Shown: one piece after another, positions 13,413 to 36,795 of the stretch
How positions within the stretch are numbered: the stretch's first letter is position 1
Layout of the letters: each line of letters begins with the position of its first letter
Sequence record: PV261925.1
Length of the DNA stretch: 64,000 bases
Strand: one strand, 5' to 3'
Program-made: the position numbers and the translations under genes
Notes under the pieces: generated by a model
Seen by the model: only the letters and a program-made list of their open reading frames with translations
What the model was told of the DNA's origin: nothing
The model's database searches: none

Positions 13413-13515
13413 GATGATTGCCGTGGTTACACTATAGCGGACCTTTGGAGGTGAGTAATTTTGAAGTCCTCAGAGTGTTACAGATAAGTGATACTGATTT
13501 GACACGATTGGGGGG

Positions 13516-13544
13516 TTGACAGAATAGGAAAGGCCTGATAGACT
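13516..13544 (+). promoter_or_regulatory. Plus-strand sigma70-type promoter with no downstream ORF
   Basis: TTGACA-N17-TAGACT. Confidence 0.65.
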
Positions 13545-13730
13545 ACGGTCTTAGACGACTATAAGATCAGGCATTTAGCAGGGGGTTTATAGGCACTCAT
13601 GAGATACTAGCGAGACCCTTTGTAGCACATTACAAGACACTTTCGCAAACATTCGCATACATTTATAAAAGGCTTTAATATACAAAAAAAGGCAAATAGC
13701 AGTATTTATTCACCTTTTTGGAGGGTAATT

Positions 13731-13901
13731 TCATTGTAACTTAGTGAAAGGATTACATGTTGTTCTTGTTACTGGATCACCTAATTGTTCTCTTGATGGG
13801 ATGTCATCATGTGGTCTATATGCACTGATGATTGGTGATAACAAGAGAGCTAATCTTTCATCCATTTGTGTATGTCTGAGGTGATAGATGTGATGATTCA
13901 T
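13731..13901 (-). CDS. Small hypothetical protein (56 aa)
   Basis: Manual translation MNHHIYHLRHTQMDERLALLLSPIISAYRPHDDIPSREQLGDP... Confidence 0.5.
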   Translation of the reverse strand: MNHHIYHLRHTQMDERLALLLSPIISAYRPHDDIPSREQLGDPVTRTTCNPFTKLQ

Positions 13902-14215
13902 ACAGTAGTCATCTCCAGATAATCAGCTTCAGTTTGTAACTTCTTACCATTCCAAATATAGATCATTGGATCATCACAAGCACCATAATCTTCAACCTCT
14001 CCATCATCATTAAAAGTTACATAATCACGCAGTGAAACTACAACCATTGCGGTCTGATTACCAAGATGATTGATACATGCTTCGAGAGTGTAATCATCAA
14101 GATCACCACAAGCTGGAGTCCATTGAATATCAAGATCTTCGTTGCGATCTTCCTCTACAATATAACGGTGCTCATCTACAGAAAAGTCAAAGGCTTCGAT
14201 AGTGGCGAATTCCAT
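13898..14215 (-). CDS. Hypothetical acidic protein
   Basis: ORF track; first gene after repeat copy 2. Confidence 0.75.
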   Translation of the reverse strand: MEFATIEAFDFSVDEHRYIVEEDRNEDLDIQWTPACGDLDDYTLEACINHLGNQTAMVVVSLRDYVTFNDDGEVEDYGACDDPMIYIWNGKKLQTEADYLEMTTV

Positions 14216-14270
14216 GTGATTGTGTGTCTTATACTATAGTGGACGTTTGAAGGTGAGTAACTTTGTAGAG

Positions 14271-14429
14271 TTATGATTGACTTACTTTATTGATAACAAC
14301 TCGATGAGCAGGGTATCTCGCTTCAACTAATTGTCTTATAAAGTCTCTATCAGAACGATCAGATTGAAGAGAAAACTCATGCCTTCTCCCCTTGTCATCA
14401 TTCCAATAACCAGTGCAATTGTAGATCAT
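14271..14429 (-). CDS. Small hypothetical protein (52 aa)
   Basis: MIYNCTGYWNDDKGRRHEFSLQSDRSDRDFIRQLVEARYPAHRVVINKVSQS; ATGA overlap with the upstream gene. Confidence 0.7.
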   Translation of the reverse strand: MIYNCTGYWNDDKGRRHEFSLQSDRSDRDFIRQLVEARYPAHRVVINKVSQS

Positions 14430-14680
14430 TTGAAGAAATTAAGACGGTGGAGTTCAGTATAAGCGAAACGACGCATATTGTCATCCTCTGTTGTATGATA
14501 CAAATTGATCATACGCTGACAATAATCAGACCTCTTTGCGATCGGTGTGATACTTTGGCGTGAAGTGTAGCCAAGGTCATTGTTACCATTGGTCCGTACT
14601 TTAGGCCGGCCAAAGTTACCAGTGACATTACCTGTTGTTCTCAGTTTAGGCTTGATCTTTGAGAGATTTGAATCAGTCAT
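14426..14680 (-). CDS. Hypothetical protein
   Basis: ORF track 14426-14701; KLRTTGNVTGNFGRPK. Confidence 0.7.
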   Translation of the reverse strand: MTDSNLSKIKPKLRTTGNVTGNFGRPKVRTNGNNDLGYTSRQSITPIAKRSDYCQRMINLYHTTEDDNMRRFAYTELHRLNFFK

Positions 14681-14810
14681 GAACTTCGGAGTTGTCATCA
14701 ATTACAGTTACAATTTGTCCGTCTTGAGTTAGAATTTCATACTGAGTTTGAAATGATGAAATATCAGCCTTTCCAACAATAATAGCAGTGGTGAGGATAA
14801 ATTCAATCAT
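14673..14810 (-). CDS. Small hypothetical protein with hydrophobic N-terminus (45 aa)
   Basis: MIEFILTTAIIVGKADISSFQTQYEILTQDGQIVTVIDDNSEVHD. Confidence 0.6.
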   Translation of the reverse strand: MIEFILTTAIIVGKADISSFQTQYEILTQDGQIVTVIDDNSEVHD

Positions 14811-14871
14811 TAGTTAAACCTTTATACAAAAAGAGTAATAAAAAAATGAGAAGAATAAAACCTATGATCGA

Positions 14872-15135
14872 TCATAACTCCCATAGCATTTCATTCATCT
14901 CATTCACATCAATGTTAGGATCATCCCAACGAACACCATCACCAGTCTTGCAGAGATGTTTACCAATTTGTCCATCCATCATACAGCGGACAAACTTATC
15001 CCAAGGAGTCTCCAAACCCTCACGGTAGGTTACACATGCCTTGGCTGTGTTGTAAAGAAACTCATCATTGCCGATCCAAAGAGCAGCGTTCCAAGTTTCA
15101 TAATTAGACCAACCGTTGTAGGTAGAATCAGACAT
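14872..15135 (-). CDS. Phage hypothetical protein (YNGWSNYETW family)
   Basis: YNGWSNYETWNAALWIGNDE motif. Confidence 0.8.
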   Translation of the reverse strand: MSDSTYNGWSNYETWNAALWIGNDEFLYNTAKACVTYREGLETPWDKFVRCMMDGQIGKHLCKTGDGVRWDDPNIDVNEMNEMLWEL

Positions 15136-15274
15136 AGTAGAAAAAGAAATAAAGGTGGTGATTAAGTGTGGTTCAGAGAAACAAGTCAGAGAAGCAATCT
15201 AGAAGAGAGAAGTCTGAGCGAGAAGTCTGAACCCTTACACCTATGTGGACATTTCGAGGTGAGTAATTCTGTGG

Positions 15275-15607
15275 TCACACAATCTTCACTTGTTCAATCT
15301 TCTCTGATTGGAAAGATTGATCCTCATACTCAACCTCAGGAGAGAATGCGACTCCAATCATACCAAGAATGATAAGATTGACAAAGTTGATCACAAAAAC
15401 ACTTGGCACACCTAATACAAACCAAGGTGTCCATTTGCCTTGAAGACCACGAAGAACTCCCCAACTTGCAAGAGCTCCAATAGGCCCAGCGGTCAATAAT
15501 CCTGCAGTGGCAGCAACACCTTGTTCAAAACCTGAGGCGGTCTGACGTACAATAACTTGTTGCTGATTGTTGGTGATAGGATCAGGAGTGGTGATAGTCA
15601 TAATCAA
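15275..15607 (-). CDS. Hypothetical membrane protein
   Basis: Hydrophobic segments AATAGLLTAGPIGALASW and FVLGVPSVFVINFVNLIILGMIGVAF. Confidence 0.75.
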   Translation of the reverse strand: MIMTITTPDPITNNQQQVIVRQTASGFEQGVAATAGLLTAGPIGALASWGVLRGLQGKWTPWFVLGVPSVFVINFVNLIILGMIGVAFSPEVEYEDQSFQSEKIEQVKIV

Positions 15608-15638
15608 AAAGTGTTAGTTTAAGAAGAAAAGTTAGAAA

Positions 15639-15980
15639 TCAGAAGTGTTGTGGACAGATACGCTTTGCAGCGTTCAATACATCAAGATCACCCATGCTGA
15701 TGGTCATCACATAGTTTTCACCATTGCGATTGACACCATTGTTTGCCATCAGTGTCAGAGTGTCGCAATGTTTAGATGCCCAATTCTCAATCTCTGAAAC
15801 TTCATATTCAGCCTCAGTTTGATCACCAATAGTTTCAACTGGTGCAGGAACTTGAGCGATTGGTGTATTGTTGGCGACTTCAGATCGCTGGATGTCTTTA
15901 CCCATATCCATAACAATCAGTCCAGAAGTCAATGCCGAGACAACACACATTGCGCCGACTTGAATGTAGTTGAATTTCAT
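15639..15980 (-). CDS. Hypothetical protein with N-terminal membrane anchor
   Basis: ORF track 15639-16076; likely start MKFNYIQ at 15980. Confidence 0.7.
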   Translation of the reverse strand: MKFNYIQVGAMCVVSALTSGLIVMDMGKDIQRSEVANNTPIAQVPAPVETIGDQTEAEYEVSEIENWASKHCDTLTLMANNGVNRNGENYVMTISMGDLDVLNAAKRICPQHF

Positions 15981-15984
15981 AAAA

Positions 15985-16143
15985 TCAGTTACCATTGAGA
16001 AAATCATGTAATGCTTCCAAATACTCTTCTTTGGTCTCAAATGTGCGACCATAGATTGTCTTTGGAAATTCGCCAAGTTCGGCGGGTTTGTTGACAGGAT
16101 CTTTGCCCTGTGACTTGATTTGATCAGTGTAAGTGTTTCTCAT
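15985..16143 (-). CDS. Small hypothetical protein (52 aa)
   Basis: MRNTYTDQIKSQGKDPVNKPAELGEFPKTIYGRTFETKEEYLEALHDFLNGN; ATG immediately follows repeat copy 4. Confidence 0.65.
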   Translation of the reverse strand: MRNTYTDQIKSQGKDPVNKPAELGEFPKTIYGRTFETKEEYLEALHDFLNGN

Positions 16144-16178
16144 ACTATAGTGGACCTTTCGAGGTGAGTAATTCTGTG

Positions 16179-16379
16179 TCAGTCTAATCTCTTGAAATGA
16201 ACTGAATTAAACTGACCTGATTTGTTCTCTAATGTAATCTTAGTGTACCATGGTTGAATGTCAACACTCTCGACAACATAGCGATGACCAACTATCAAAT
16301 GAGATGGATAATCACTCGATGCCCATAACAACTGTTCATGAGTTGCTCCCTTAAATTCTACTATATCACCTGACTGCAT
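16179..16379 (-). CDS. Hypothetical protein
   Basis: ORF track; stop abuts repeat copy 4. Confidence 0.7.
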   Translation of the reverse strand: MQSGDIVEFKGATHEQLLWASSDYPSHLIVGHRYVVESVDIQPWYTKITLENKSGQFNSVHFKRLD

Positions 16380-16575
16380 TTATCATATCCTCCCACACTT
16401 CTTCGCCCATCATATCACTAATCTCCTCTTGCAAGTCAGTTTCATCATAATCTTTCATATTTGTTTCTATTTGTTCTGCTGCCCACTGACATAGAGTCTT
16501 GAGATCCATACCATCAACGATTAGCCAGGCATAGTCATTCTTTAGGTTATCAAGTTGTTCAGGTGTGAGTGTCAT
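16366..16575 (-). CDS. Hypothetical protein
   Basis: Likely start MTLTPEQL at 16575. Confidence 0.7.
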   Translation of the reverse strand: MTLTPEQLDNLKNDYAWLIVDGMDLKTLCQWAAEQIETNMKDYDETDLQEEISDMMGEEVWEDMINAVR

Positions 16576-16605
16576 TGGATCAGTGTAATATGCGACAAAA
16601 GACAT

Positions 16606-16627
16606 AAAAAAAGAGGGTAAAACCCTC
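16606..16627 (-). terminator. Rho-independent terminator
   Basis: GAGGGT-TTT-ACCCTC followed by T7. Confidence 0.75.
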
Positions 16628-16970
16628 AAGCAAAAACATAACCAGAATGGAAATCTTCAACGTTGTAGACTTTACCAGTTACTGAAGATTCGCCAATGAA
16701 CTTGCGAACATACCAGAGAAAGTCTTTCTGGAAAACACCTTCACCAGCGATACAATACTCTTCGCAAAGTGCATTGAGTCGTGATTTAGTGGTGTTAGAT
16801 TGCCAACCACCGTCAAAGATAGTCAGGCTAGTGTCATCAACCAGAGCAATTTTATTGCCGTGGAGATAAACAGTGGAAACACCCATGTTGGTGACAACTT
16901 CAGTGTTTCCAGATTTCCAGTTTTTGTTGCCGTTGATGGCTTCAATCATCTGGGATTCAATCTTACGCAT
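16626..16970 (-). CDS. Hypothetical protein
   Basis: MRKIESQMIEAINGNKNWKSGNTEV...LHGNKIA...TTKSRLNAL; first gene after repeat copy 5. Confidence 0.8.
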   Translation of the reverse strand: MRKIESQMIEAINGNKNWKSGNTEVVTNMGVSTVYLHGNKIALVDDTSLTIFDGGWQSNTTKSRLNALCEEYCIAGEGVFQKDFLWYVRKFIGESSVTGKVYNVEDFHSGYVFA

Positions 16971-17019
16971 GTGGTTTAGTGGTTCTTACACTATAGTGGA
17001 CATTTGGAGGTGAGTAATT

Positions 17020-17487
17020 CTAGTCTCTGGTAATTAACCACCAAAGTATACCACCAACGACAATTAAGGGAATGGTAATATACCAATATGCAATGGCAAC
17101 AAATACTATACCAAGTGCAAGTAGACCTCCTATGTCACCCATTGACATACTACTTCCACCAGAGTTAGTGTTATTGTAATTGACCTGATGTGTCCCACTA
17201 GATGTAATTGGAGTGGGTGTAGATGATGCCTTGATTCTTTCCTCCTGGTCTCTAAATCGTTGGTTTTGTTCTTCTATCTTTCTCTTGCGTTCTTCTTCTC
17301 TTCTATTATGTTCTTCACGTCTTCCAATATCATAATTATCGACCAATATCGCTGATTTAACATTGGCGCCAGGATAACGTGACCGTGCAACATCAAGTGC
17401 AGCATTGCCACTATTCACACCATCAATCAAAATATCTTGGTTGCGGTAGTTACGATCGCCGTAAATGTGAATTTTGTAAGTAGGCAT
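17020..17487 (-). CDS. Hypothetical membrane protein (coiled coil plus C-terminal TM segments)
   Basis: ORF track; TAG directly abuts repeat copy 5. Confidence 0.75.
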   Translation of the reverse strand: MPTYKIHIYGDRNYRNQDILIDGVNSGNAALDVARSRYPGANVKSAILVDNYDIGRREEHNRREEERKRKIEEQNQRFRDQEERIKASSTPTPITSSGTHQVNYNNTNSGGSSMSMGDIGGLLALGIVFVAIAYWYITIPLIVVGGILWWLITRD

Positions 17488-17515
17488 GAGATTGAAGAAT
17501 AAAATACTTTAACAA

Positions 17516-17626
17516 GTGGCCTTACATTGTATCAAGGTAACCACACCAAAACATGATACAAATGCCACACATTATGGGCCTTACATGAGTGTTGTAACCA
17601 CCACAGAAATTACACTCAATGCCCAT
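17516..17626 (-). ncRNA. Tandem pair of structured hairpins (GUAAG internal-loop scaffold), candidate ncRNA
   Basis: Unit B 17574-17626: ATGGGC-AT-TGAGTGT-19nt-ACACTCA-TGTAAG-GCCCAT. Unit A 17516-17568: GTGGC-AT-TTGTATCA-19nt-TGATACAA-TGTAAG-GCCAC. Stem sequences differ but pairing is kept. Confidence 0.65.
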
Positions 17627-17629
17627 CAA

Positions 17630-17812
17630 TCAAAAAGGATTAGTCCATTTGTGGTGTTGTTGTTTCGTAATCCTACCATCATCAAGTAAACTATCAACCA
17701 CATTTAGGAAGACAGCCCACTTCATGTCACGAGTGAAAGTAATACCTTCCTCTTTGCAATGAGTGTTCACAGTATTACGAACAACGCGTTGAACTTCAGT
17801 TTTTGTCATCAT
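17630..17812 (-). CDS. Hypothetical protein
   Basis: ORF track; LLDDGRITKQQH motif. Confidence 0.7.
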   Translation of the reverse strand: MMTKTEVQRVVRNTVNTHCKEEGITFTRDMKWAVFLNVVDSLLDDGRITKQQHHKWTNPF

Positions 17813-17866
17813 TTTTGTCCTTGTTTGGTTTAGTTGGTTTCGTCCAATAATCGCGGTAAATTGACA

Positions 17867-18019
17867 TCAATTAGTGGGAAAGTTACGACAGACGGCATCA
17901 CAAAGCATACGAATTACATCATCTTTATACTCAACTTCACCAAAGTTAGATTCAATAATACAATCAATGTCCTCCATGAGTTGTTCACGAGCGGTCAACA
18001 TTTCGAGTTGGTCCATCAT
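17867..18019 (-). CDS. Small acidic hypothetical protein (50 aa)
   Basis: MMDQLEMLTAREQLMEDIDCIIESNFGEVEYKDDVIRMLCDAVCRNFPTN. Confidence 0.65.
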   Translation of the reverse strand: MMDQLEMLTAREQLMEDIDCIIESNFGEVEYKDDVIRMLCDAVCRNFPTN

Positions 18020-18174
18020 TTAGAAAGAAGAAAACGACGTGCTTCGTAGGCTTGAAATTGTGAATTGAATGTGGCAATCTTGGTCATATCTTCACGCCAA
18101 TATAATGCCCATTTGTGTGACCCTATCACACCTTTAGCGATGATAGGGTTATCAATACCAAGTGGATAAGTCAT
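18016..18174 (-). CDS. Small hypothetical protein (52 aa)
   Basis: MTYPLGIDNPIIAKGVIGSHKWALYWRED...; ATGA overlaps on both sides. Confidence 0.65.
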   Translation of the reverse strand: MTYPLGIDNPIIAKGVIGSHKWALYWREDMTKIATFNSQFQAYEARRFLLSK

Positions 18175-18332
18175 TCTTCAATAACAGATTGGATTACAAA
18201 TTGTGGTTGATTTCGATTACAAGTTGCAATTGCTTCCTCTTTACTAGAAGCAATGTAACCTAGACAATCTCTCATTGTCCAACCATTAGCACGATGATGT
18301 TCACCGTAGATCAGAAACTTAGATTCTTTCAT
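18171..18332 (-). CDS. Hypothetical protein
   Basis: Likely start MKESKF at 18332. Confidence 0.65.
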   Translation of the reverse strand: MKESKFLIYGEHHRANGWTMRDCLGYIASSKEEAIATCNRNQPQFVIQSVIEE

Positions 18333-18336
18333 GTTA

Positions 18337-18564
18337 TCAACCTCCGTAGACTTCTTCAGCCATAGGTGTATCACTCATGCGATCGAGGTGATCCCAAAGT
18401 GTGTTTTTTTCACCAAACATTTCTTGGAAGAGATCAAGATCTTGACGATCATATTGATCTTTAACAATCCAAATCTCTTGTTCAATCCATGCAAGTTCTG
18501 CACGAGCTTTATCTAGTTTCTTACGAAGTTCGTAAAGCTTTTGGTTTCTTTCTGTGAGTGTCAT
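18337..18564 (-). CDS. Hypothetical coiled-coil protein
   Basis: ORF track; first gene after repeat copy 6. Confidence 0.7.
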   Translation of the reverse strand: MTLTERNQKLYELRKKLDKARAELAWIEQEIWIVKDQYDRQDLDLFQEMFGEKNTLWDHLDRMSDTPMAEEVYGG

Positions 18565-18614
18565 AATGATTCAGTGGTTACACTATAGTGGACATTTCGA
18601 GGTGAGTAATTCTG

Positions 18615-19205
18615 TCAGCCCAACAATACCTGAGGAAAGTATGGAGTCAGGTCAGAATCTACAATCTTATGTTCACAACTCACAAATTTCTTTCGTGATA
18701 CATTCTTGACATAGATCAGGTGGTTAATGTCAATATCTTTGTAATCTTGTGGTCCACGTTTACGAATAAGACCAAAGGCTTCGTTCTCTTCGCGAGTGGA
18801 AACAACGACCTTTGAAAGTTTATCAATGTCTGTCAAAAAATGAGTGATAAGATCATAAGAACGATCTTCCACAAACTTATCATAGTGATATGCAAATATG
18901 AACTTTGAACCACTACGAACACCGCCGAAGTGTTCTTTAGTCAAACTGTGTCCACCTTTGACCTTCATATCAATCACACTGGACAAAGTTTTGTCAGGAT
19001 ATTCACTCCACTTAATAAAAGCTTGAGGAGTGAGGAGAGCACCAGTGTCATCAATTTTATGAGAACCTGCCCAACAAATACCACCAGAAAGATCTTCTAC
19101 AACCTTGAACATGGTCTCACGGGTGTAGATATTGACCTGCTCATCTGTCAGAGACATGATGAGTTTGAGTTGATTAGTTAGGTATCTTTTAGTGGTGGCA
19201 GTCAT
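18615..19205 (-). CDS. Hypothetical protein (196 aa), single-gene cassette between repeat copies 7 and 6
   Basis: ORF track. Confidence 0.8.
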   Translation of the reverse strand: MTATTKRYLTNQLKLIMSLTDEQVNIYTRETMFKVVEDLSGGICWAGSHKIDDTGALLTPQAFIKWSEYPDKTLSSVIDMKVKGGHSLTKEHFGGVRSGSKFIFAYHYDKFVEDRSYDLITHFLTDIDKLSKVVVSTREENEAFGLIRKRGPQDYKDIDINHLIYVKNVSRKKFVSCEHKIVDSDLTPYFPQVLLG

Positions 19206-19250
19206 CGGTTTAATGTGGTTACTTAAGTGGACATTTAGAGGTGAGTAATT

Positions 19251-19454
19251 CTATTTGAGCTCAATTCGGTCAATCAAGACCATACCAAGGTCAAAATATA
19301 GATCATCATCAATGTCACCAAGCTTTTCACGGAGAGCATCACCAACCATGTCGGTCATCATCTCCATATAACGCTCATCTTCATAGATTTGATTGATAAT
19401 ATCCTCCTTCAATGCGTCGGCGAGTTTGGATACACATTTTGCAGAAAGTGCCAT
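19251..19454 (-). CDS. Hypothetical acidic protein
   Basis: ORF track; TAG abuts repeat copy 7. Confidence 0.75.
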   Translation of the reverse strand: MALSAKCVSKLADALKEDIINQIYEDERYMEMMTDMVGDALREKLGDIDDDLYFDLGMVLIDRIELK

Positions 19455-19455
19455 G

Positions 19456-19536
19456 TCAGTTGTTAGTGAGAATGTTTATGATTGTGATGAATAATGCACC
19501 ACACATAACGTAGTAGATGAAACGAAAAATAACCAT
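19456..19536 (-). CDS. Putative small membrane peptide (26 aa)
   Basis: MVIFRFIYYVMCGALFITIINILTNN; TAATG coupling with the upstream gene. Confidence 0.45.
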   Translation of the reverse strand: MVIFRFIYYVMCGALFITIINILTNN

Positions 19537-19865
19537 TATCGTAAGTAAAGATAACCACCTGCCCAATCAGCACGTTCATAACATTGTTCGCGTGATTCAA
19601 TCCTCAGAAGATTGTAACGAACACCTTTGGCTGGTGCTTTGAATGATGCAGGTTTGTAAACATCACCAGTCTTCTTATCAACAAAGGCATGAACACTGCG
19701 GGAGTTACCATCAGTCTCCATGATCAGTTTGTGATACTTACGACCAGATTCAATGTAAAACTTGTAACCATCAGACTTGTAATTGTTACGGCGAAGGAAA
19801 TCTTCCATCAACACACCGCAAAGAATGTTAGCGTGTTTCTCAACAATTTGTGTGGGAGTGATCAT
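19536..19865 (-). CDS. Hypothetical protein
   Basis: GRKYHKLI...SVHAFVDKKTGDVYKPASFKAPAKGVRYNL motif. Confidence 0.8.
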   Translation of the reverse strand: MITPTQIVEKHANILCGVLMEDFLRRNNYKSDGYKFYIESGRKYHKLIMETDGNSRSVHAFVDKKTGDVYKPASFKAPAKGVRYNLLRIESREQCYERADWAGGYLYLR

Positions 19866-19882
19866 AGCTTTGTGTGGTTACA

Positions 19883-20026
19883 CTATTGTGGACCTTTGGA
19901 GGTGAGTAATTCTGAAGACCGACGATTGATGGCGGCTACTTCTACACTACTACAAGGAATCAGAACCTTTTGATTTACCCACACAATCTTGCGAGTGTCA
20001 ATATCTGATGCGATGTTGTAAGTCAT
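19883..20026 (-). CDS. Small ORF (47 aa) reading through repeat copy 8
   Basis: MTYNIASDIDTRKIVWVNQKVLIPCSSVEVAAINRRSSELLTSKGPQ; ATGA overlap with the upstream gene. Confidence 0.5.
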   Translation of the reverse strand: MTYNIASDIDTRKIVWVNQKVLIPCSSVEVAAINRRSSELLTSKGPQ

Positions 20027-20343
20027 TCAAGTTCCTCAATAGGGTTGGCGTAAAGATCATTCTCTGTGGTCACATCAGTGAACACATCTTCATCATCATC
20101 AGCAAATAACAGATATAAAATCTCATCATTGTCCTTGACATTCCACTCTTGATAGAGAGAAATAATGTCGCCAGATACTTGTTCTTTCTTTTTATTCTTG
20201 TTTAATGATTTACCTAGTTTCTTAATACGTTTTGCATATGCTTCTTGCTGATCATTGGCAAGATATTCAACTCTATCAAGATTGAAGACAAACTTGTTAC
20301 CTTCAATCTCAAAGGTTTCGGAATTTGCGGTATCAAAATTCAT
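20023..20343 (-). CDS. Hypothetical protein
   Basis: ORF track. Confidence 0.7.
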   Translation of the reverse strand: MNFDTANSETFEIEGNKFVFNLDRVEYLANDQQEAYAKRIKKLGKSLNKNKKKEQVSGDIISLYQEWNVKDNDEILYLLFADDDEDVFTDVTTENDLYANPIEELE

Positions 20344-20388
20344 AATAATAATGTGGTTAATTCAATTGTATCTTATAAACTACCGATG

Positions 20389-20592
20389 TCAATCGGTAGT
20401 GGTTGCCTTACCCACATTAGATGGGCCTTTCCAAACCAAACCATCTTCTTCCCATTTACTGATAAAGGCACGACGAAGCATCATCAGTTCATCATATCGT
20501 GATTGTTGAGATGAAGTATAGTTGAAGTTTTGTACCCTCCAAGTTTTACGAAGTTCTTGAAGTTCACGGATGATTTGAGAAGAATTGTTCAT
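20389..20592 (-). CDS. Hypothetical protein
   Basis: ORF track. Confidence 0.7.
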   Translation of the reverse strand: MNNSSQIIRELQELRKTWRVQNFNYTSSQQSRYDELMMLRRAFISKWEEDGLVWKGPSNVGKATTTD

Positions 20593-20633
20593 GATGTTGT
20601 TCTTAGATTAAGTAAAATAAGTTTAGGTTTATG

Positions 20634-20891
20634 TCATTCAATACGAGTGATTACAACGTAATTAGAATCATCATCAAATTTAGGGGGATGGATCGTCCTC
20701 GTCACTTTGTAGCCCGTTTTCTTCAATGCACTAGGAATATCTGGGCCCCTGTAGTCTTCACAATAATCATCACAGCGAAGAATGAATGACATTCCAATAT
20801 CTAGTTGTTGCCATGGGTGTTTCTGTTTACGACCCTTGCTTGGAGAATGAAATAGTTCTTCAATTTGATGGGGGGTGTAGATTTCGGACAT
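20634..20891 (-). CDS. Hypothetical protein (K-H/Y-P-W/F..L.IG.SF type, possibly DNA-binding)
   Basis: GRKQKHPWQQLDIGMSF motif; first gene after repeat copy 9. Confidence 0.7.
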   Translation of the reverse strand: MSEIYTPHQIEELFHSPSKGRKQKHPWQQLDIGMSFILRCDDYCEDYRGPDIPSALKKTGYKVTRTIHPPKFDDDSNYVVITRIE

Positions 20892-20935
20892 GATTAGACG
20901 TGATTACAATAGAGTGGACGTTTGGAGGTGAGTAA

Positions 20936-21487
20936 TTATGAACCGAGACAGAATTGTCTGAGTTTCCGAGTAATAGAGGGTGCAGTGATGTCTTCCGACA
21001 CAACATATGCCTCTAATTCTTCCAGAATAGTATCTTCATGAAGACCCTTGGCTTTCAGTCGCGAACGTAACTGAGCAAGACGTTCTTCATCATAAGATGG
21101 AGACAAAGACAAGAATTTAGCAAGTTCTTCTTCATTGAACATCGTTGTAGTTTTACCATCAGCAATATAACCACTTGCACAATCTTGGATTACATGATGT
21201 GCCTCATGTCGCAGTGTGTTGTAGTCATTCTCGGTCCATTTGTATTGTTTATTTGAACCTGGAATCATCTTATCTTGACAGATAACTAACATTCCAGAAT
21301 AAGGATAGTAAATACCATCCATTTTCTTTCTGTCATTACAATGATTGAGATGATTGACCAATGTAACTACACCAAGGTCTTGCAAAGTGTTCCACAATTC
21401 ATTATGGTCATCATGAATGTCAGCCTTGGCAATACCAGGAGTGAGAACTGCGGTTGCTGCGAGAAGAGAAAGAAATAGTTTTTTCAT
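20936..21487 (-). CDS. Secreted HExxH zinc-metallopeptidase-like protein
   Basis: Signal peptide MKKLFLSLLAATAVLTPGIAKA; LRHEAHHVIQDC. Confidence 0.6.
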   Translation of the reverse strand: MKKLFLSLLAATAVLTPGIAKADIHDDHNELWNTLQDLGVVTLVNHLNHCNDRKKMDGIYYPYSGMLVICQDKMIPGSNKQYKWTENDYNTLRHEAHHVIQDCASGYIADGKTTTMFNEEELAKFLSLSPSYDEERLAQLRSRLKAKGLHEDTILEELEAYVVSEDITAPSITRKLRQFCLGS

Positions 21488-21492
21488 GTTAA

Positions 21493-21744
21493 TCAGAAGT
21501 CAGGTCCAAGAATTTCCATAAGATCAGCAGGATCAGTACTGCCGAGATAAGTCTCAGTAAAGAGAATTGCTAGTTCTCTACTACCAAACTCAATCTCTAC
21601 ATTATCCCAGATCCTGTCATTATATACTTTGACAGTGATAGGTTGAACACCCGATTCTTCAATTGTTTCAGAAATATTATAATAAATGTCATCACCATCA
21701 CTACAATCAAAGTCATAAGTGACTTTTACAGTTGACATAATCAT
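21493..21744 (-). CDS. Hypothetical acidic protein
   Basis: Likely start MIMSTVKV at 21744. Confidence 0.65.
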   Translation of the reverse strand: MIMSTVKVTYDFDCSDGDDIYYNISETIEESGVQPITVKVYNDRIWDNVEIEFGSRELAILFTETYLGSTDPADLMEILGPDF

Positions 21745-21941
21745 TTTGATTCCTCCAGAGTAATAGTACGATACTGATTGACAATGGTCTCTAGTTCCAT
21801 AACACAATGTTGCATTGTGGCACGAGAGTAACCAGTAGCATAAGGATAACCCTGATCAGGGTTATTCAACGCATCATGTGATACATTCACTCCATCTTGA
21901 AGACTTTCGATGATTGTGATTAGTTTGGTGTCGATGTTCAT
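21741..21941 (-). CDS. Hypothetical protein
   Basis: Likely start MNIDTKL at 21941; GYPYATGYSR motif. Confidence 0.7.
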   Translation of the reverse strand: MNIDTKLITIIESLQDGVNVSHDALNNPDQGYPYATGYSRATMQHCVMELETIVNQYRTITLEESK

Positions 21942-21951
21942 GATAGGTAAT

Positions 21952-21990
21952 AAAAAACCGCTGTAGGGGATCAGAGACACCTTACAGCGG
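21952..21990 (-). terminator. Rho-independent terminator
   Basis: CCGCTGTA...TACAGCGG followed by T6. Confidence 0.75.
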
Positions 21991-21997
21991 AGAATAG

Positions 21998-22207
21998 TCA
22001 GACAGTGGTCTTAGGACCAAACTCACGTTGATAAGAATCTTTCACATACTCAACAGTTTGTTGAATGAAAGGCTTGACATAATCAACGAGTTGTTTTACA
22101 TCTTCAATGAGCTTGTTAGTCTCATACTGATGAATCTCCCAACGTACTTTGATGTCGGCAAGATACTGTTGACGAGTAATAAGAACTTGAGGAGTGGTTT
22201 GAGTCAT
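21998..22207 (-). CDS. Hypothetical protein
   Basis: ORF track; first gene after repeat copy 10. Confidence 0.75.
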   Translation of the reverse strand: MTQTTPQVLITRQQYLADIKVRWEIHQYETNKLIEDVKQLVDYVKPFIQQTVEYVKDSYQREFGPKTTV

Positions 22208-22257
22208 AGAAGTGTGGTCTCTACACTATAGGGGACATTTGGAGGTGAGTAATTCTG

Positions 22258-22461
22258 TCACCTCTTCTTTTTCTTGAGTTTGTTAATCAATGTCATCGCA
22301 GATTGTCTGTTACGACATACTTTAACCACCACACCATTGTGAACAACCACAAGTTTAGTTGTTGAACCAACCAGTGGAATTGCAGCCAGATAACCATCAC
22401 CCACAATGATAGGTAATGTTCCTGGTTTACAATCAAGGATGTGTGAGTTTGTGTAATGCAT
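22258..22461 (-). CDS. Hypothetical protein
   Basis: ORF track; stop abuts repeat copy 10. Confidence 0.7.
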   Translation of the reverse strand: MHYTNSHILDCKPGTLPIIVGDGYLAAIPLVGSTTKLVVVHNGVVVKVCRNRQSAMTLINKLKKKKR

Positions 22462-22915
22462 TTAGATATACTTGGTGGGCTTCTTCAATAGTATCATATA
22501 TCCCCAAATATTCAGTTTTACCTTCATGTGCAATACGAGAGTAATATCTACCACTATGTGCGGTCGATACACCTCTGACACCTAATTCATTATTGTTTCT
22601 TACTTTAGTATTGTAATTATTCTGTGTTTGGTCAACTGCTCGTAAGTTTTCTATTCTGTTATTACTTTTGTTTCTATCAATATGGTCTATTTGTTGTTCC
22701 TGCTCTAAGTCACCATAATGATACTGATACACCAATCTGTGCTTTAAATATATCTTCTTATCCACAGATATTTGATAATATCCAGTGTGATGTTTAGTCC
22801 CTGCAATAGAACCTGCAGGTTGTCTTCCCCTACATTTTTTGTAGATAAGTTCACCATCTTGGTAGGCGAAAAGTTCCTGTAACCTACCCTGTGAAGGGAG
22901 TTGATAATTTCTCAT
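22433..22915 (-). CDS. HNH homing endonuclease with C-terminal AP2 DNA-binding domain
   Basis: YLKHRLVY...IDHIDRNKSNNRIENLR (HNH_3) and GVRGVS..GRYYSRI..YLGIYDTIEEA (AP2). Confidence 0.9.
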   Translation of the reverse strand: MRNYQLPSQGRLQELFAYQDGELIYKKCRGRQPAGSIAGTKHHTGYYQISVDKKIYLKHRLVYQYHYGDLEQEQQIDHIDRNKSNNRIENLRAVDQTQNNYNTKVRNNNELGVRGVSTAHSGRYYSRIAHEGKTEYLGIYDTIEEAHQVYLNALHKLTHP

Positions 22916-23010
22916 GTGTGTCTTGGCGATGACATTACTATTTAGAATTTTATCATAATGTGGGACTTACGTCAATTTACCCGCCAAGACACACTGACTG
23001 CCCACATTAT
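22916..23010 (-). promoter_or_regulatory. Structured leader (GUAAG scaffold hairpin E1 + late promoter + loop-complementary RBS region) of the HNH gene
   Basis: ATAATGTGGG/CCCACATTAT stem; GTCA/TGAC inner stem; loop GTGTGTCTTGGCG (22982-22994) is the exact complement of the 13 nt before the ATG (22916-22928); TAAATA at 22939-22944. Confidence 0.75.
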
Positions 23011-24188
23011 TATTTACGAGTTACACTGTCAAGCATTTCTCCCTTCTCAAACACAATATCAACACAACGCTGGAGAGACTTTTGAGTGGAAAGTCCTACC
23101 TGATTGTAGACAGGGACGCAGAGCATACCGTAGGTTTTAGTAGAAGAACCAACCCTAATGACACGTCCGACAGTTTGAAGAAGCTCAATACTGTCCATGT
23201 TACGAAGGAAGATAACCGCCTCAAGTTCAGACACGTTGATGCCTTCAGACAGAATAGAACGGTGAAGGACAACAAATTTCTTTGACTTGTCACGACCCCA
23301 TGCATTCAGAGTATTGAAAAACTCTTCACGAGATACTTTCTGACCATCGATAACAGCACCAGTCTTGGCGGTGATATACAGATAAGAGTAACCACGTTCT
23401 GTCAACTGATCAGCGAAATCAGTCATGAACAGGTTCTGTAACTGTCGTGTGGTCTTAACACAAACCAGAATCTTCTTGATGTCAATCTGGTCAATAGATG
23501 CGAGGACATTGTTACCCTCAAGATGAGGAGTGAGAGACTTTTTGTCAATCTTATCCATCTCAATCACCTTGACCTTAGGTGGAAGAATGTAACCATTCTG
23601 AACCAGATCAGGTGCAGACACACGTGCAATCACTTGACCATAAGTCTCAGTCCAGTTCATGCCTGGTTTCTTCACAGTCACACTGGTTTTACGAGTTGCA
23701 GTGAAGTAGTAACAACGATCTGCATGCTTACTGAAATACTCAGTGGGACCGTAGAAGTTACGTTGAACAGAGTTATGTGCCTCGTCAAAGTAAATCGTAT
23801 CTACAGCAATACCAGACTCTTGAACACGATGAAGAGAGTGATATGTGGTGAAGATAATAACGTGTTCACGCATAGTGTGACACATATCAACAAATAGTTT
23901 GATACGTTCAGACTTAGTGGTACTGAAATGTTGTGTCTCTCCACTATGAACATGGAGAACATTTGCATTGGTGATATGTTCCAGATACTCTGATGACAGT
24001 TGTTCTGCCAACAGAATACGAGGAGCGACAACAACAATAGTGCGAGGAACTTTTATCTCAAATCGTCTCACTGCGTCCATGATAGCGATAAGAGTCTTGC
24101 CGCCACCAGTAGGAACAATGATTTGACCGATAGAATTATTACGAAGAGCGTAAACAGCGTCCTGTTGATGAGGGCGGAGTTTGATCAT
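23010..24188 (-). CDS. Superfamily 2 (DEAH-type) helicase
   Basis: LRPHQ, PTGGGKT (motif I), DEAH (II), TAT (III), LSEGINV (V), QTVGRVIR (VI). Confidence 0.92.
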   Translation of the reverse strand: MIKLRPHQQDAVYALRNNSIGQIIVPTGGGKTLIAIMDAVRRFEIKVPRTIVVVAPRILLAEQLSSEYLEHITNANVLHVHSGETQHFSTTKSERIKLFVDMCHTMREHVIIFTTYHSLHRVQESGIAVDTIYFDEAHNSVQRNFYGPTEYFSKHADRCYYFTATRKTSVTVKKPGMNWTETYGQVIARVSAPDLVQNGYILPPKVKVIEMDKIDKKSLTPHLEGNNVLASIDQIDIKKILVCVKTTRQLQNLFMTDFADQLTERGYSYLYITAKTGAVIDGQKVSREEFFNTLNAWGRDKSKKFVVLHRSILSEGINVSELEAVIFLRNMDSIELLQTVGRVIRVGSSTKTYGMLCVPVYNQVGLSTQKSLQRCVDIVFEKGEMLDSVTRK

Positions 24189-24231
24189 TTATGTGGTGTA
24201 TGTAATAGTGTGGACGTTTGGAGGTGAGTAA

Positions 24232-25113
24232 TTATGAACCGTATCCATTATGGAAGTTAGCATATGCAAACTCGGTACGATCTACCAGTTTAACACATCC
24301 ATAGGTGTTAGAGTGGAAAACATATCCTTCACCACTACATTTCTTACCATTAGGAAGATAAGATTGTGGTGCGTCGGTGACAATCAGACTGTCCATAATA
24401 TCCAGTTTGATTTCCATCACAAACTGATACAGATTAGTGAGATGTTGACAACCAAGAATGTCAGTCAGGGTTGCGTCATCAATATACTGACCAGATTTGA
24501 TGAGTGCGTTGATAGCAGTCTTAGCCTTAGCAGCTTCCTTATCAGTCAGAAACTTGATACCCTTAGGGTTAATCTTAGGGACAGATCCTTGGGGAGGAAT
24601 ACGATCAACAGAAGGTTGCACCCACTTGACCATAGTGGTGTCTTCAAATGTTTCCATCAAAGGTGAACACACATTCTTCCACATTTCCTCGTGAACGTCA
24701 ACAGCTGTGTGAGGAGCGATGACAAGTTTCTGGTCAATTGCTTCGTCAAAGACATACGTCAGAGTGTTCTGAGTAAACACATCAGTACGACCGAAACCAA
24801 GCCAATCACCCCAGTAAATCTTCTCGGTACGAGGAAGATACTTGAAACAATGAGACAGAATATCTACAACTTCGATTTGATGACCAAAATGAGTGAAGAT
24901 GTCGTCAATAGAGTAACAAAGACGAACTTTCTTCTTGTTAAATGCAGCTTTTGTACACACAAAAAACTTACCATTGGCAGGGTTAGTACCCCAAACCAAC
25001 GACATTCCATCCATCTTCATAGAGATGTGTGCGTGATCATAAAGAAGATCAAACACTGACATATCTCCAGTCAAAATGCAGTCTTCGGGATGTTCCAGGT
25101 GAGTTTGTGTCAT
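24232..25113 (-). CDS. Hypothetical protein with ligase-like covalent nucleotidyltransferase motifs
   Basis: SMKMDG (KxDG), EGYVF and VKLVDR in the expected order; THLEHPED N-terminus. Confidence 0.6.
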   Translation of the reverse strand: MTQTHLEHPEDCILTGDMSVFDLLYDHAHISMKMDGMSLVWGTNPANGKFFVCTKAAFNKKKVRLCYSIDDIFTHFGHQIEVVDILSHCFKYLPRTEKIYWGDWLGFGRTDVFTQNTLTYVFDEAIDQKLVIAPHTAVDVHEEMWKNVCSPLMETFEDTTMVKWVQPSVDRIPPQGSVPKINPKGIKFLTDKEAAKAKTAINALIKSGQYIDDATLTDILGCQHLTNLYQFVMEIKLDIMDSLIVTDAPQSYLPNGKKCSGEGYVFHSNTYGCVKLVDRTEFAYANFHNGYGS

Positions 25114-25164
25114 AATATGGTGTGGTCTCGTACTATAGATGACCTTTCAAGGTGAGTAATTCTG

Positions 25165-25617
25165 TCAGATCACATGTATGCTCTCTATATGTGACACTGG
25201 TGAAGATTTACAGTAGAACTGTATATTTTTGTTGTATTTGGTTCTTCTTACAATTCTCTTCAATGCGTTGTAGTCGGTGTCATTATCTCTGGCCCATTTA
25301 GATAATTGATGACATTCAACCACATCACCGTTTCTAAACCTAATTCTATATGTCTTTGCATTAGGGTTGTTATTCAACCCTTGTTCTACAAACTGTTTCT
25401 TATCTGTAAAAACATTGATACGTCCTAACACCCAACCGTCAGGTATTTCGTCTTCAAATACCATCTTATGTTCAAGTCCGTTATTTACCCATACAGACCC
25501 ACGAACATACGACACACGGGCGTCATACACAGGTGTTAGTTCTTCTTCAGTCAGTGTAATTACTGACGGTCCATCACATTCAAACGCGCGATTAAGACCT
25601 TCACAGTTCCAGTCCAT
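25165..25617 (-). CDS. Homing-endonuclease-derived DNA-binding protein, no evident catalytic domain
   Basis: WVNNG..HK..IPDGWVLGR and NPNAKTYRI..LSKWARDN resemble endonuclease C-terminal DNA-binding modules; no GIY-YIG or HNH motif seen. Confidence 0.6.
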   Translation of the reverse strand: MDWNCEGLNRAFECDGPSVITLTEEELTPVYDARVSYVRGSVWVNNGLEHKMVFEDEIPDGWVLGRINVFTDKKQFVEQGLNNNPNAKTYRIRFRNGDVVECHQLSKWARDNDTDYNALKRIVRRTKYNKNIQFYCKSSPVSHIESIHVI

Positions 25618-25625
25618 TCTTCTAT

Positions 25626-25705
25626 TGACAGGGGTAATTATATTTATACCATAAAATGGGTCTTACGTCAACCTAACACCCCTGCCATGTTGACCGCCCA
25701 ATATT
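25626..25705 (-). promoter_or_regulatory. Structured leader (GUAAG scaffold hairpin E2 + late promoter TATAAATA)
   Basis: TGGG-CG-GTCAAC-16nt-GTTGAC-GTAAGA-CCCA; loop TGGCAGGGGT pairs with ACCCCTGTCA (25626-25635); TATAAATA at 25641-25648. Confidence 0.75.
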
Positions 25706-25865
25706 ATTGAACAGGAGTTTGTCTTGAAACTCGTTTGATTACATCTTTGGTAATCTCCTGTTTCATTTCTTCCTTTTCTCTTTCCTGTTCTTTCTTGTCT
25801 CTTTCAGCATCGATCTTAGCCTGAGCCTGTTGTGCCTTTGACTGAAATTGATTGTAGTTATTCAT
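25704..25865 (-). CDS. Small coiled-coil protein (53 aa)
   Basis: MNNYNQFQSKAQQAQAKIDAERDKKEQEREKEEMKQEITKDVIKRVSRQTPVQ. Confidence 0.65.
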   Translation of the reverse strand: MNNYNQFQSKAQQAQAKIDAERDKKEQEREKEEMKQEITKDVIKRVSRQTPVQ

Positions 25866-26017
25866 GGCAATACTACCCAGACTTTGTTACCATTTTTCAT
25901 TGTAGTATGGTTATCAACATATTGTTTTGCTCTCACAATTGTCATACCATGGTTAGTTCTCAGATAAGATCTTGCTTCTGTGACTGTATTAAACAGTCGC
26001 ATCATCTTCTGTGTCAT
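25862..26017 (-). CDS. Small hypothetical protein (51 aa)
   Basis: MTQKMMRLFNTVTEARSYL...KVWVVLP; ATGA overlaps. Confidence 0.65.
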   Translation of the reverse strand: MTQKMMRLFNTVTEARSYLRTNHGMTIVRAKQYVDNHTTMKNGNKVWVVLP

Positions 26018-28908: not shown

Positions 28909-29101
28909 TTTGATAAGAGTACAGAAGATCTAACATCTTCCGACGCCATTCCATCAATTCTTCGAAACATTCCTGATTGTGAGCACAACCACGAAGTTTA
29001 CTGTCTGGTTTGAGGACACTCTCAATCATAAGACCAAGAGCTCTTTTTTCAGGATCAGTCATCGAAAACTTTACATTGTGGAGCTGAGGGGTGGGTATCA
29101 C
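28868..29101 (-). CDS. Hypothetical protein
   Basis: ALGLMIESVLKPDSKLRGCAHNQECF. Confidence 0.7.
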   Translation of the reverse strand: MIPTPQLHNVKFSMTDPEKRALGLMIESVLKPDSKLRGCAHNQECFEELMEWRRKMLDLLYSYQNEERDYEISSQVS

Positions 29102-36772: not shown

Positions 36773-36795
36773 CTCAATATCTTTTTAGGTATTTA

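Follow-up and report, generated by a model that had tools for sequence, protein, structure and literature searches.

A cyanophage hairpin family with an invariant GUAAG internal loop and its association with mobile homing-endonuclease cassettes in Synechococcus phage RB11-B

Temporal control of translation by RNA pairing has been described for several genes of T4-type phages. In T4 e, soc, 49 and I-TevI and in Aeh1 mobE, read-through RNA hides the initiation region, whereas RNA from a late promoter inside the 5′ arm of the inhibitory helix leaves it accessible, which has been demonstrated by experiment for e, I-TevI and mobE; T4 segB is also among the genes under this type of control (PMC3014915). 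Another described element of T4-type phages is the PeSL (promoter-early stem-loop), a cassette of a stem-loop and a promoter located at indel breakpoints and proposed to act as a recombination substrate (PMC4122927). The PeSL stem-loops are described as effective terminators just upstream of the promoter (Arbiol et al. 2010, PMC2839356; Comeau et al. 2014, PMC4122927). Mini-circles are reported to arise by recombination between PeSL copies. In this study, we analysed the terminal 64 kb of the genome of Synechococcus phage RB11-B (PV261925.1, 210,127 bp), hereafter called the window (window position = record position − 146,127), and four intergenic hairpins in it, E1 to E4, which share an internal loop containing GUAAG. 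RB11-B is a T4-like cyanomyovirus with Synechococcus sp. MW02 as isolation host.

The hairpins E3 and E4 resemble T4-type masking in that a 5′ arm lies upstream of a late-promoter-like box and a 3′ arm covers an initiation region, in the association with homing endonucleases and in the support by covariation; the pairing with the initiation region is found at both loci, and the late box between the arms is present as a sequence. Unlike in the T4 genes, the 5′ arm is the apical loop of a separately conserved hairpin and not a plain stem, a sigma70-type −35/−10 pair is superimposed on the element, and the module is common to unrelated endonuclease families. With PeSLs, the RB11-B elements and their counterparts in sibling phages share a stem-loop directly upstream of a strong predicted sigma70-type promoter and the start of a small gene (E2-E1 in the siblings, and E3 and E4), as well as near-identical promoter copies scattered over a hyperplastic region (nine within 13.4–25.2 kb) at breakpoints of insertion, deletion and replacement. 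PeSL hairpins are simple and terminator-like (GN-loop-CN; A3-4G3-loop-C3T3-4). The GUAAG hairpin, in contrast, has an invariant asymmetric internal loop and no U-tract, also occurs without a promoter, between tRNA genes and in cyanophages outside the T4 type, and at E3 and E4 overlaps the −35 box and adds a late box and a loop complementary to the initiation region. The promoter units of the window number at least 13, and only four of them have the hairpin.

We consider it probable, though far from assured, that the GUAAG hairpin is a mobile module which masks start sites in cis, with a promoter bypassing the mask, and which also serves as an intercistronic signal. The features that are new compared with the described systems are the GUAAG-loop scaffold and its spread over cyanophage lineages and tRNA clusters, the use of the apical loop of this conserved scaffold to present the masking sequence, the superposition of −35, −10 and late boxes on the hairpin, and the apparent transferability of the complete cassette between at least three unrelated families of homing endonucleases. 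Our literature search returned no account of a GUAAG internal-loop phage hairpin and no relevant description of a cyanophage RNase III, terminator or stem-loop. The system provides a handle on the silencing of selfish endonuclease genes on host-gene read-through transcripts, and with it the concept of mobile regulatory cassettes, known from PeSLs, also applies to cyanomyoviruses of the sea.

Between 13 and 28 kb of the window every gene is encoded on the minus strand, which is the coding strand meant in the original prediction, and CTTAC on the plus strand corresponds to GUAAG in RNA. The minus-strand reads at the four predicted sites, their minimum-free-energy (MFE) folds and a covariance model agree on four hairpins of one architecture (Table 1). 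Each MFE fold consists of an outer stem, an asymmetric internal loop, an inner stem and a loop of 16–19 nt. The claim that the loci begin within a few nucleotides of a stop codon was borne out: E2 starts 3 nt past the TGA of an open reading frame (ORF) of 60 aa, the core of E3 4 nt past a TAA, and E4 3 nt past the TAA of a 53-aa ORF. The outer stem of E3 can be extended up to 10 bp (AUAAUGUGGG/CCCACAUUAU) and then overlaps the stop codon of the helicase gene (23012..23010); a twin of E3 with identical sequence is present in the viral contig L278. The pattern GGGC-N18-46-GTAAGNCCC has three matches in the window, compared with 0.02 expected, E1 being a GUGGC/GCCAC variant of it.

The seed of the covariance model comprised 43 members, all of them from contigs other than RB11-B. 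Searched against the window with filters off, it recovered exactly E1–E4, the next match scoring 10.9 bits, so that the homologous copies elsewhere on which the prediction depended do exist. No further hairpin copy was detected in the remaining 146 kb of the RB11-B genome, and a descriptor scan over every GTAAG of the window yielded no other convincing copy. One weak candidate on the minus strand (17045..16975), with a 10-bp outer stem and GTAAG, extends across the end of a 155-aa ORF and a copy of an early promoter; it is not among the model's matches up to an E-value of 10 and is probably a chance fold.

To delimit the family, three pattern scans of IMG/VR were carried out. The first scan of viral contigs specified 14 bases and returned mostly chance matches, hence an architecture filter was applied; the other scans specified 17–18 bases. 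At least 182 unique members were obtained, and family counts and percentages given here and below are those among the matches listed. The internal loop has CA or CAU on its 5′ side and (U)GUAAG on its 3′ side, followed by one further base in the order of preference U > C > G > A. Outer stems have 4–10 bp, inner stems 3–13 bp and loops 2–32 nt, more than half of the members having loops of only 2–11 nt.

Both stems were examined by tests which do not presuppose the helices. An inner stem of at least 4 bp can be formed in 40% of the raw pattern matches and in 1–2% after shuffling of the interior, and the first unconstrained position of the outer stem is paired in 76–87%, compared with 37.5% by chance. 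In the seed alignment, double-sided changes occur in 8 of 10 scaffold pairs and both stems co-vary; the covariation score of the scaffold is 0.695, while shuffles score 0.17 and slid controls no more than 0.17. The maintenance of pairing despite differing stem sequences, noticed initially in the four RB11-B copies, is thus a strong trait of the wider family.

The inner stems contain 564 Watson-Crick pairs, 53 G·U pairs and 2 A·C mismatches. Because G·U pairs outnumber A·C mismatches by far and the hairpins are strictly co-oriented with the genes, the data indicate an RNA fold on the sense strand and not a DNA or antisense structure. DNA-level readings, i.e. TTAC hairpins of the IS200/IS605 type, hairpin promoters of the N4 type and cruciforms, are disfavoured by the same asymmetry and co-orientation. 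One could also dispense with any RNA function and explain the elements by common descent of mobile DNA cassettes, by promoter constraints on the DNA or by a DNA hairpin used in recombination. The cassettes are indeed mobile and located at breakpoints, the 3′ arm of the E3/E4 type is at the same time a −35 box, and PeSLs have been discussed as recombination substrates (PMC4122927). We nevertheless regard this explanation as highly improbable, since compensatory changes are found in both stems of members without any promoter, the pair counts and the orientation point to selection on the sense-strand RNA fold, and the long-range helix described below co-varies too.

The placement of the family relative to genes is uniform. 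The 5′ foot lies at a median of 6 nt (mode 2–4 nt) past the stop codon of a co-oriented ORF and the next co-oriented start codon at a median of 30 nt past the 3′ foot; 140 of the 182 members have both the upstream stop and the downstream start. The hairpins are not discrete RNA genes: beginning 3–4 nt past a stop codon and lacking a separate promoter, they belong to the mRNA of the upstream gene.

With Rfam 15, no family was matched by the elements at the gathering threshold, nor at E ≤ 10 over 17400–25800, and the multi-copy contigs L108, L229, L176 and L240 gave no match at E ≤ 1, in agreement with the assessment that this is not a named Rfam family. One pattern scan of 185,579 bacterial and archaeal genomes (596 Gb) gave nine matches, eight of which are chance matches that do not form the hairpin; nine is at or below the approximately 35 expected, a figure estimated from database size. 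A host origin of the hairpin was therefore rejected, the cellular genomes containing chance-level matches only. The multi-copy contigs with short loops are related to Synechococcus phage S-EIVl, in whose own genome two strong copies occur, and another carrier contig codes for a family A DNA polymerase. Since these phages carry copies as well, the scaffold is common to unrelated cyanophage lineages. The hairpins constitute an abundant, phage-only RNA family that is uncatalogued in Rfam.

E3 is located between the helicase gene and a gene for an HNH endonuclease, annotated as 'homing endonuclease' in the sibling phage S-B05. Its apical loop contains a segment whose 13 nt all pair with the initiation region adjoining the HNH ATG (Table 1), so that the complementarity in cis claimed for this copy holds. 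In the 115-nt read-through RNA, the MFE structure is this long-range helix (−31.5 kcal/mol, z = −3.9). The predicted sigma70-type promoter is interlocked with the hairpin, its −35 box being formed by the 3′ arm of the inner stem and the G of GUAAG, and a box of the T4 late type follows between hairpin and anti-loop. As the junctions show, the cassette was placed precisely at the boundary of the helicase stop and the gene that follows. This downstream gene of 67 aa is overlapped by the 3′ end of the HNH gene, from which it receives its start codon (window 22433–22461 / 22258–22461). In phages with an empty site, the ATG of the 67-aa gene overlaps the helicase stop (TAATG); the insertion rewrote the first 3–4 codons of this neighbour.

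The arrangement recurs in relatives. Among members with a loop of at least 12 nt, 24 of 67 show perfect complementarity of at least 8 nt between the loop and the stretch from hairpin to start codon, compared with 2 of 67 for an upstream control. A pairing of 11–13 nt ending 0–2 nt from the ATG is present in 18 members, each having an (A/T/C)TAAATA box in between. Loop and anti-loop change together, as in GUAAGUCUUGGCG/CGCCAAGACUUAC, GUGUCAGGGGU/ACCCCUGACAC, GUAGUUAGGGGUA/UACCCCUAACUAC and GUAGUCUGGGGA/UCCCCAGACUAC. Across 19 aligned cassettes, pairing in the 12-bp helix amounts to 95.6%; 7 of the 12 pairs show double-sided and none one-sided changes, and 0 of 500 shuffles reach its score. RNAalifold independently predicts the same long-range helix as consensus. 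The covariation of loop and target proposed as a check is hence present for the E3/E4 type, with compensatory changes in 19 independent cassettes.

All 19 aligned cassettes have a late-type box between hairpin and anti-loop, either (T/C)ATAAATA or CTAAATA. When the 3′ arm of the inner stem, together with the G of GUAAG, reads TTGACG or TTGCG(T), a match of at least five of six positions to TATAAT is found at a distance of exactly 17 nt in 77–82%, versus about 0–1% of the other members. This −10 element has two forms in the cassette class: in copies like E4 it coincides with bases one to six of TATAAATA, and in copies like E3 a TATAAT/TAAAAT of its own precedes CTAAATA/ATAAATA by 1–3 nt. Judging from these boxes, hairpins of the E3/E4 type are composites of a stem-loop with putative sigma70-type and late-type promoters placed between loop and target. 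The ORFs downstream of the cassettes code for NUMOD3 proteins, whose N-terminus bears a motif identified by eye as GIY-YIG-like, and for HNH_3 and HNH proteins. The module of hairpin, promoters and anti-loop is common to these unrelated endonuclease families and, as far as gene content tells, behaves as a portable expression cassette.

For E4, the claimed complementarity in cis was likewise found, as a helix of 9 bp including one G·U pair (Table 1); relatives listed for it with co-varying loop and anti-loop are GCAGGGGU/ACCCCUGC, UUGUGGGGG/CCCCCACAA and again GUGUCAGGGGU/ACCCCUGACAC. The 150-aa ORF that follows is probably derived from a homing-endonuclease gene or a degenerate form of one. 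It has no Pfam family, and its link to homing endonucleases comes from PHROGs only, where just the C-terminal part of an HNH-endonuclease family (phrog_10820) is matched. The cassette was inserted directly 5′ of an early-promoter copy (25159..25132). The possibility that the genes downstream of the hairpins are paralogues was rejected, as they share only 17–20% identity and a Pfam HNH domain is present in one only.

Comparison with siblings shows that both cassettes, 22453–23015 and 25169–25871, are missing from RN05-S with clean junctions. The breakpoints versus siblings are at 17511/17512, i.e. at the foot of E1, at 22453–23015, and at 25169–25871 beside the promoter copy mentioned above.

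Table 1. Features of the RB11-B window discussed in the text (window positions unless stated otherwise)
Feature	Position	Strand	Evidence and remarks
E1 hairpin, second of tandem pair: GUGGC-AU-UUGUAUCA-loop-UGAUACAA-UGUAAG-GCCAC	17568..17516	-	covariance model, 16.2 bits
E2 hairpin: AUGGGC-AU-UGAGUGU-19-nt loop AAUUUCUGUGGUGGUUACA-ACACUCA-UGUAAG-GCCCAU	17626..17574	-	covariance model, 31.7 bits, E 1.5e-6
E3 hairpin: (AUAAU)GUGGG-CA-GUCAGU-16-nt loop-AUUGAC-GUAAGU-CCCAC(AUUAU)	23010..22955, core 23005..22960	-	covariance model, 35.0 bits, E 1.8e-7
E4 hairpin: UGGG-CG-GUCAAC-16-nt loop-GUUGAC-GUAAGA-CCCA	25700..25657	-	covariance model, 24.2 bits, E 2e-4
E3 apical-loop antisense segment GUGUGUCUUGGCG	22994..22982	-	exact reverse complement of 22928..22916, 13/13 nt
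E3 anti-loop CGCCAAGACACAC, adjoining HNH ATG; putative masked initiation region	22913..22928, paired part 22928..22916	-	complementarity, fold, covariation
Predicted sigma70-type promoter overlapping E3	22975..22947	-	-35 TTGACG 22975..22970, 17-nt spacer, TG-n-TAAAAT -10 22952..22947
T4-type late-promoter-like box CTAAATA between E3 hairpin and anti-loop	22945..22939	-	sequence
HNH homing endonuclease gene, 160 aa	22433..22915	-	Pfam HNH_3 4.4e-17; phrog_99 1.3e-54
Inserted cassette: E3, promoters and HNH gene	22453..23015	-	absent from RN05-S and S-B43, present in S-B05
E4 loop antisense segment GGCAGGGGU	25686..25678	-	pairs with 25635..25627, 9 bp including one G·U
E4 anti-loop ACCCCUGUC	25635..25627	-	ends 9 nt before ATG (25617..25615)
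Predicted E4 promoter: -35 TTGACG 25671..25666, 17-nt spacer, TATAAATA 25648..25641	25641..25671	-	dual reading: sigma70-type -10 and perfect T4-type late box
150-aa ORF after E4	25165..25617	-	phrog_10820 8.6e-7, profile positions 176-211 of 214
Inserted cassette: 53-aa ORF, E4 and 150-aa ORF	25169..25871	-	absent from RN05-S
Nine near-identical putative early promoters, (A)GAA-TTACTCACCTCCAAATGTCCAC-TATAGT	25159..25132, 22252..22225, 20935..20906, 19909..19882, 18609..18582, 17017..16990, 16171..16144, 14260..14233, 13458..13431	-	
Replaced segment: promoter-less leader and 155-aa ORF	17022..17511	-	siblings: early promoter and 205-aa gene
Further nuclease-type genes (positions of the RB11-B record)	13433-13912, 18925-19425, 24539-25111, 28648-29091, 33881-34420, 36456-36881, 36928-37386, 106491-106982, 116049-116279		

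By analogy with the T4 genes, the following course of events can be proposed. The hairpin would be transcribed as the 3′ tail of the upstream cistron, starting 2–7 nt past the stop codon, and the RB11-B hairpins would represent the stem-loop half of mobile stem-loop plus promoter cassettes, a cyanophage counterpart of the T4-type PeSLs. At E3 and E4, read-through RNA would hold both loop and anti-loop and form the long-range helix, by which the start site would be masked; RNA initiated at the cassette promoter would start without the loop and could be translated. Production of the endonuclease would thus depend solely on the promoter of the cassette, which would act mainly late. In addition, the scaffold, marked by its invariant internal loop, would be a processing or 3′-end-stabilising signal read by some factor of host or phage. 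The family with its structure and positions, the pairing of loops with initiation regions, the promoter boxes and the presence or absence of the cassettes are observed in the sequences, and we infer from them the masking of translation and the activity and timing of the promoters.

Several points weigh against this scheme. The scheme deduces promoter use, transcript ends and effects on translation from sequence and analogy. Should the sigma70-type promoter of the cassette be active early, the endonuclease would not be an exclusively late product and masking would amount to insulation from read-through only. Anti-loops of the E4 type end 8–10 nt before the ATG and are not Shine-Dalgarno sequences, which makes the strength of masking uncertain. 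Because a 13-bp loop helix leaves no steric room for the inner stem to stay intact, the RNA probably adopts either the scaffold or the masking helix, and the model leaves unexplained why the antisense segment is housed in a GUAAG scaffold at all. It equally leaves unexplained the strong conservation of the E1/E2 loops, which have no consistent partner in cis. Among known internal-loop motifs, compared by eye, none of K-turn, 11-nt tetraloop receptor, sarcin-ricin/loop E and UAA/GAN fits. Finally, the scaffold is not required for the control of other endonuclease genes of RB11-B, since these have late boxes and no scaffold.

These other genes are at least nine further free-standing genes of nuclease type (Table 1), among them HNH, TnsA-like and Endo VII-like genes, the latter between psbD and psbA, and an 'intron-encoded endonuclease' beside gp23. 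Upstream of several of them lies a CTAAATA or TATAAATA box, and in some a local hairpin is located close to the start codon; a GUAAG scaffold was found at none of them.

The role of the scaffold itself can be approached through copies beside tRNA genes. In at least ten cyanomyovirus contigs, a copy with the loop ACCACCACCACCUC, which is anti-Shine-Dalgarno-like, starts 0 nt after a tRNA-Arg gene and ends 4–10 nt before a tRNA-Gly gene (L046 11335–11382; also L127, L141, L147, L148, L181, L194 and L198). S-EIVl-like contigs have a copy ending 1–7 nt before tRNA-Leu (e.g. L108 8000–8037, and L176). Most copies with short loops lie 24–43 nt before a start codon with no promoter in between. Since these distances of 0–10 nt to tRNA genes and 24–43 nt to start codons leave no room for a promoter, the hairpin must, by this gene order, be transcribed through, and it must be removed from tRNA precursors. 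Antisense pairing, seen in the original prediction as the purpose of the scaffold, can hardly be its primary role, because more than half of the loops, with 2–11 nt, have no antisense capacity. By analogy, we infer that the scaffold is an intercistronic processing or 3′-end-stabilising signal with the invariant internal loop as recognition feature. The sharing of this scaffold by T4-like, S-EIVl-like and other cyanophages, together with the copies beside tRNA genes, suggests that RNA in infected cyanobacteria passes through an as yet uncharacterised processing or stabilising step.

The nearest parallel for such a signal are the RNase III processing sites of T7, which, reportedly from the work of Dunn and Studier, are multi-copy intercistronic hairpins of two helices with an asymmetric internal loop, located just past stop codons, comprising about two helical turns of dsRNA and cut by RNase III at the internal loop. 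The GUAAG hairpins are likewise multi-copy, intercistronic and two-helical, lie within polycistronic RNA and just past stops. They differ in that their helices total about 9–16 bp, which is short for RNase III, and in the invariance of the internal loop; the likeness is one of sequence and predicted fold.

Alternatively, the hairpins could be terminators or attenuators as in PeSLs, the internal loop being incidental or tuning termination by the cyanobacterial RNA polymerase. The quoted descriptions of PeSL stem-loops as effective terminators (PMC2839356; PMC4122927) and the position close behind stop codons would fit, and in promoter-type cassettes the sequence after the foot is T-rich, with at least five T in 9 nt in 57%. 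In members of the non-promoter classes such a T-tract occurs in only 14–18%, and a terminator scan flagged none of E1–E4. In addition, transcription must pass hairpins that adjoin tRNA genes or start codons so closely, and the pairing of loops with initiation regions is sensible only in read-through RNA. We therefore rejected an intrinsic terminator for the family, the hairpins lacking a U-tract and adjoining tRNA genes, and consider the broader terminator or attenuator reading unlikely. Judged by its internal loop, few T-tracts and proximity to tRNA genes, the GUAAG hairpin does not look like the simple hairpin and efficient terminator of a PeSL.

An invariant internal loop between co-varying helices is also typical of sites recognised by proteins, and the scaffold might be an operator for a translational repressor or another RNA-binding protein, either a phage RegA homologue or a host protein, that controls the downstream cistron or stabilises one fold. 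RB11-B has a 'translational regulator' gene at the position expected for RegA, and E1 and E2 contain AUGUAA, which we take to resemble part of the SELEX consensus of T4 RegA. AUGUAA is, however, absent from E3, E4 and most members, and the scaffold is carried by the S-EIVl-like phages and the contig with a family A DNA polymerase, in which a T4-type RegA is not expected. The operator reading is hence quite improbable in our judgement.

The tandem pair E2-E1 differs from E3 and E4 in the fate of its downstream half. RN05-S, S-B05 and several metagenomic contigs have the E2-E1 pair or a single E2-type hairpin, followed after 10–20 nt by an early promoter and a gene; in the siblings and in contigs L163, L140 and L111, the order is E2-E1 pair, 10–20 nt, TTACTCACC..N..TATAGT and ATG. 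The pair is kept as a unit in contigs L163, L206, L140, L118 and L119, and in L111, L221 and L180 the E2 loop is carried by other stems, whose changes compensate each other. In RB11-B, the sequence ceases to be homologous to that of the siblings 4 nt past the foot of E1, and promoter and 205-aa gene are replaced. Read from this comparison, E2-E1 in RB11-B is apparently an orphan stem-loop half, whose promoter and gene half was swapped by recombination at the hairpin foot. The 155-aa ORF now present (17020–17487, minus strand) has a charged, coiled-coil-like middle and a hydrophobic C-terminal segment; it matches no Pfam or PHROG family and has no recognisable promoter of its own, and would therefore depend on read-through across E2-E1.

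The early promoters belong to the repeat family listed in Table 1 (span 13431..25159), to which a variant copy near 19250..19223 on the minus strand may be added. Each copy is followed by a leader of about 10–20 nt, often with GTAACCAC, and then by an ATG. The copies cross-match between sibling phages and mark indel breakpoints, and by its sequence the family looks like a promoter repeat of the PeSL type. Their −35 region contains TCACCTCC, which we take to be the 3′ end of 16S rRNA (anti-Shine-Dalgarno).

The E1 and E2 loops, GGUGUGGUUAC and GUGGUGGUUAC, show complementarity to GTAACCAC, the box behind the −10 of the early promoters. The original prediction had taken this complementarity to be apparently in trans. 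The target is in fact a promoter box that relatives have in cis, and the cis partner of RB11-B was lost with the replaced segment. Because the box reads GTAACCACAC, GTAACTGC, ACAACCAAC, GTAGTTCT or ATGACTAAC in relatives while the E1/E2 loops stay constant, the pairing appears not to be consistently maintained and loop and target do not co-vary.

This bears on the proposal of a protein-bound scaffold presenting a reprogrammable antisense loop that also acts in trans, the E1/E2 loops pairing with the GUAACCAC leaders of early-promoter units. It agrees with a constant scaffold and variable loops, with the excess of GTAACCAC in the window (13 copies versus 2.3 expected, four directly after early-promoter −10 boxes), with the stability of the E1-loop duplexes at the candidate sites (−18 to −22 kcal/mol versus −15 for the 1% random quantile), and with the conservation of the E1/E2 loops across phages and the retention of the orphan pair in RB11-B. 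We nevertheless hold it to be very improbable. Every proven pairing is in cis with a promoter between hairpin and target; the hairpins begin 3 nt past a stop with neither promoter nor terminator of their own; the leader varies without covariation; and most loops are too short for antisense. Moreover, mRNAs from these promoters would miss most of the GTAACC box, which is situated downstream of the −10 and ahead of the expected transcription start, and of the seven coding-strand sites for the E1 loop only four follow other promoter copies, three being inside large genes. Use of these trans sites is unsupported. What stands of the proposed modular system is the constant internal loop with co-varying stems and, for the E3/E4 type, pairing in cis; its guide-like, trans-silencing part found no support. 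Rather unlikely is also a more general version, in which the internal loop CA(U)/(U)GUAAGN would be the site for a host or phage protein or nuclease and a platform for programmable loops, some of them acting in trans on early-promoter read-through leaders; start masks of homing endonucleases, ACCACCACCACCUC in tRNA clusters and the conserved GUGGUUAC loops of E1/E2 would be the loops on this platform.

Further observations concern sequence likenesses and neighbouring features. In E4, ATTGGGC...GTAAG (25700..25690, 25666..25662) recalls the promoter of the RNA polymerase of the cyanopodovirus Syn5, ATTGGGCACCCGTAA (PMC3950665, PMC4538805). GGGC and GTAA are common to both sequences. The block order differs and we know of no single-subunit RNA polymerase in T4-like phages as a group, so the likeness was judged a coincidence. 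In several relatives (contigs L154 2976–3030 and L163 ~5340–5395), the 3′ half of the E1-type hairpin reads GGTTACCTTGTTAC, presumably the first 14 nt of the universal 16S primer 1492R, which would complement 16S rRNA near its 3′ end. A compensated stem change in RB11-B, TGTATCA/TGATACA, breaks the match and suggests a coincidence here too.

The tRNA cluster of RB11-B has no copy of the scaffold. The sole Rfam match of the window (54 bits), at 63778–63862 on the minus strand, is a tRNA of 85 nt; its variable arm is long, and its anticodon loop CUUAAAA suggests tRNA-Leu(UAA). In S-B05 (MK799832.1), the segment of helicase, E3 and HNH gene is about 118 kb away in the record. A 102-bp 'repeat_region' is annotated there at 40399–40500 and 158813–158914, where synteny with RB11-B breaks; this looks like a permutation or assembly junction and not like hairpin biology.

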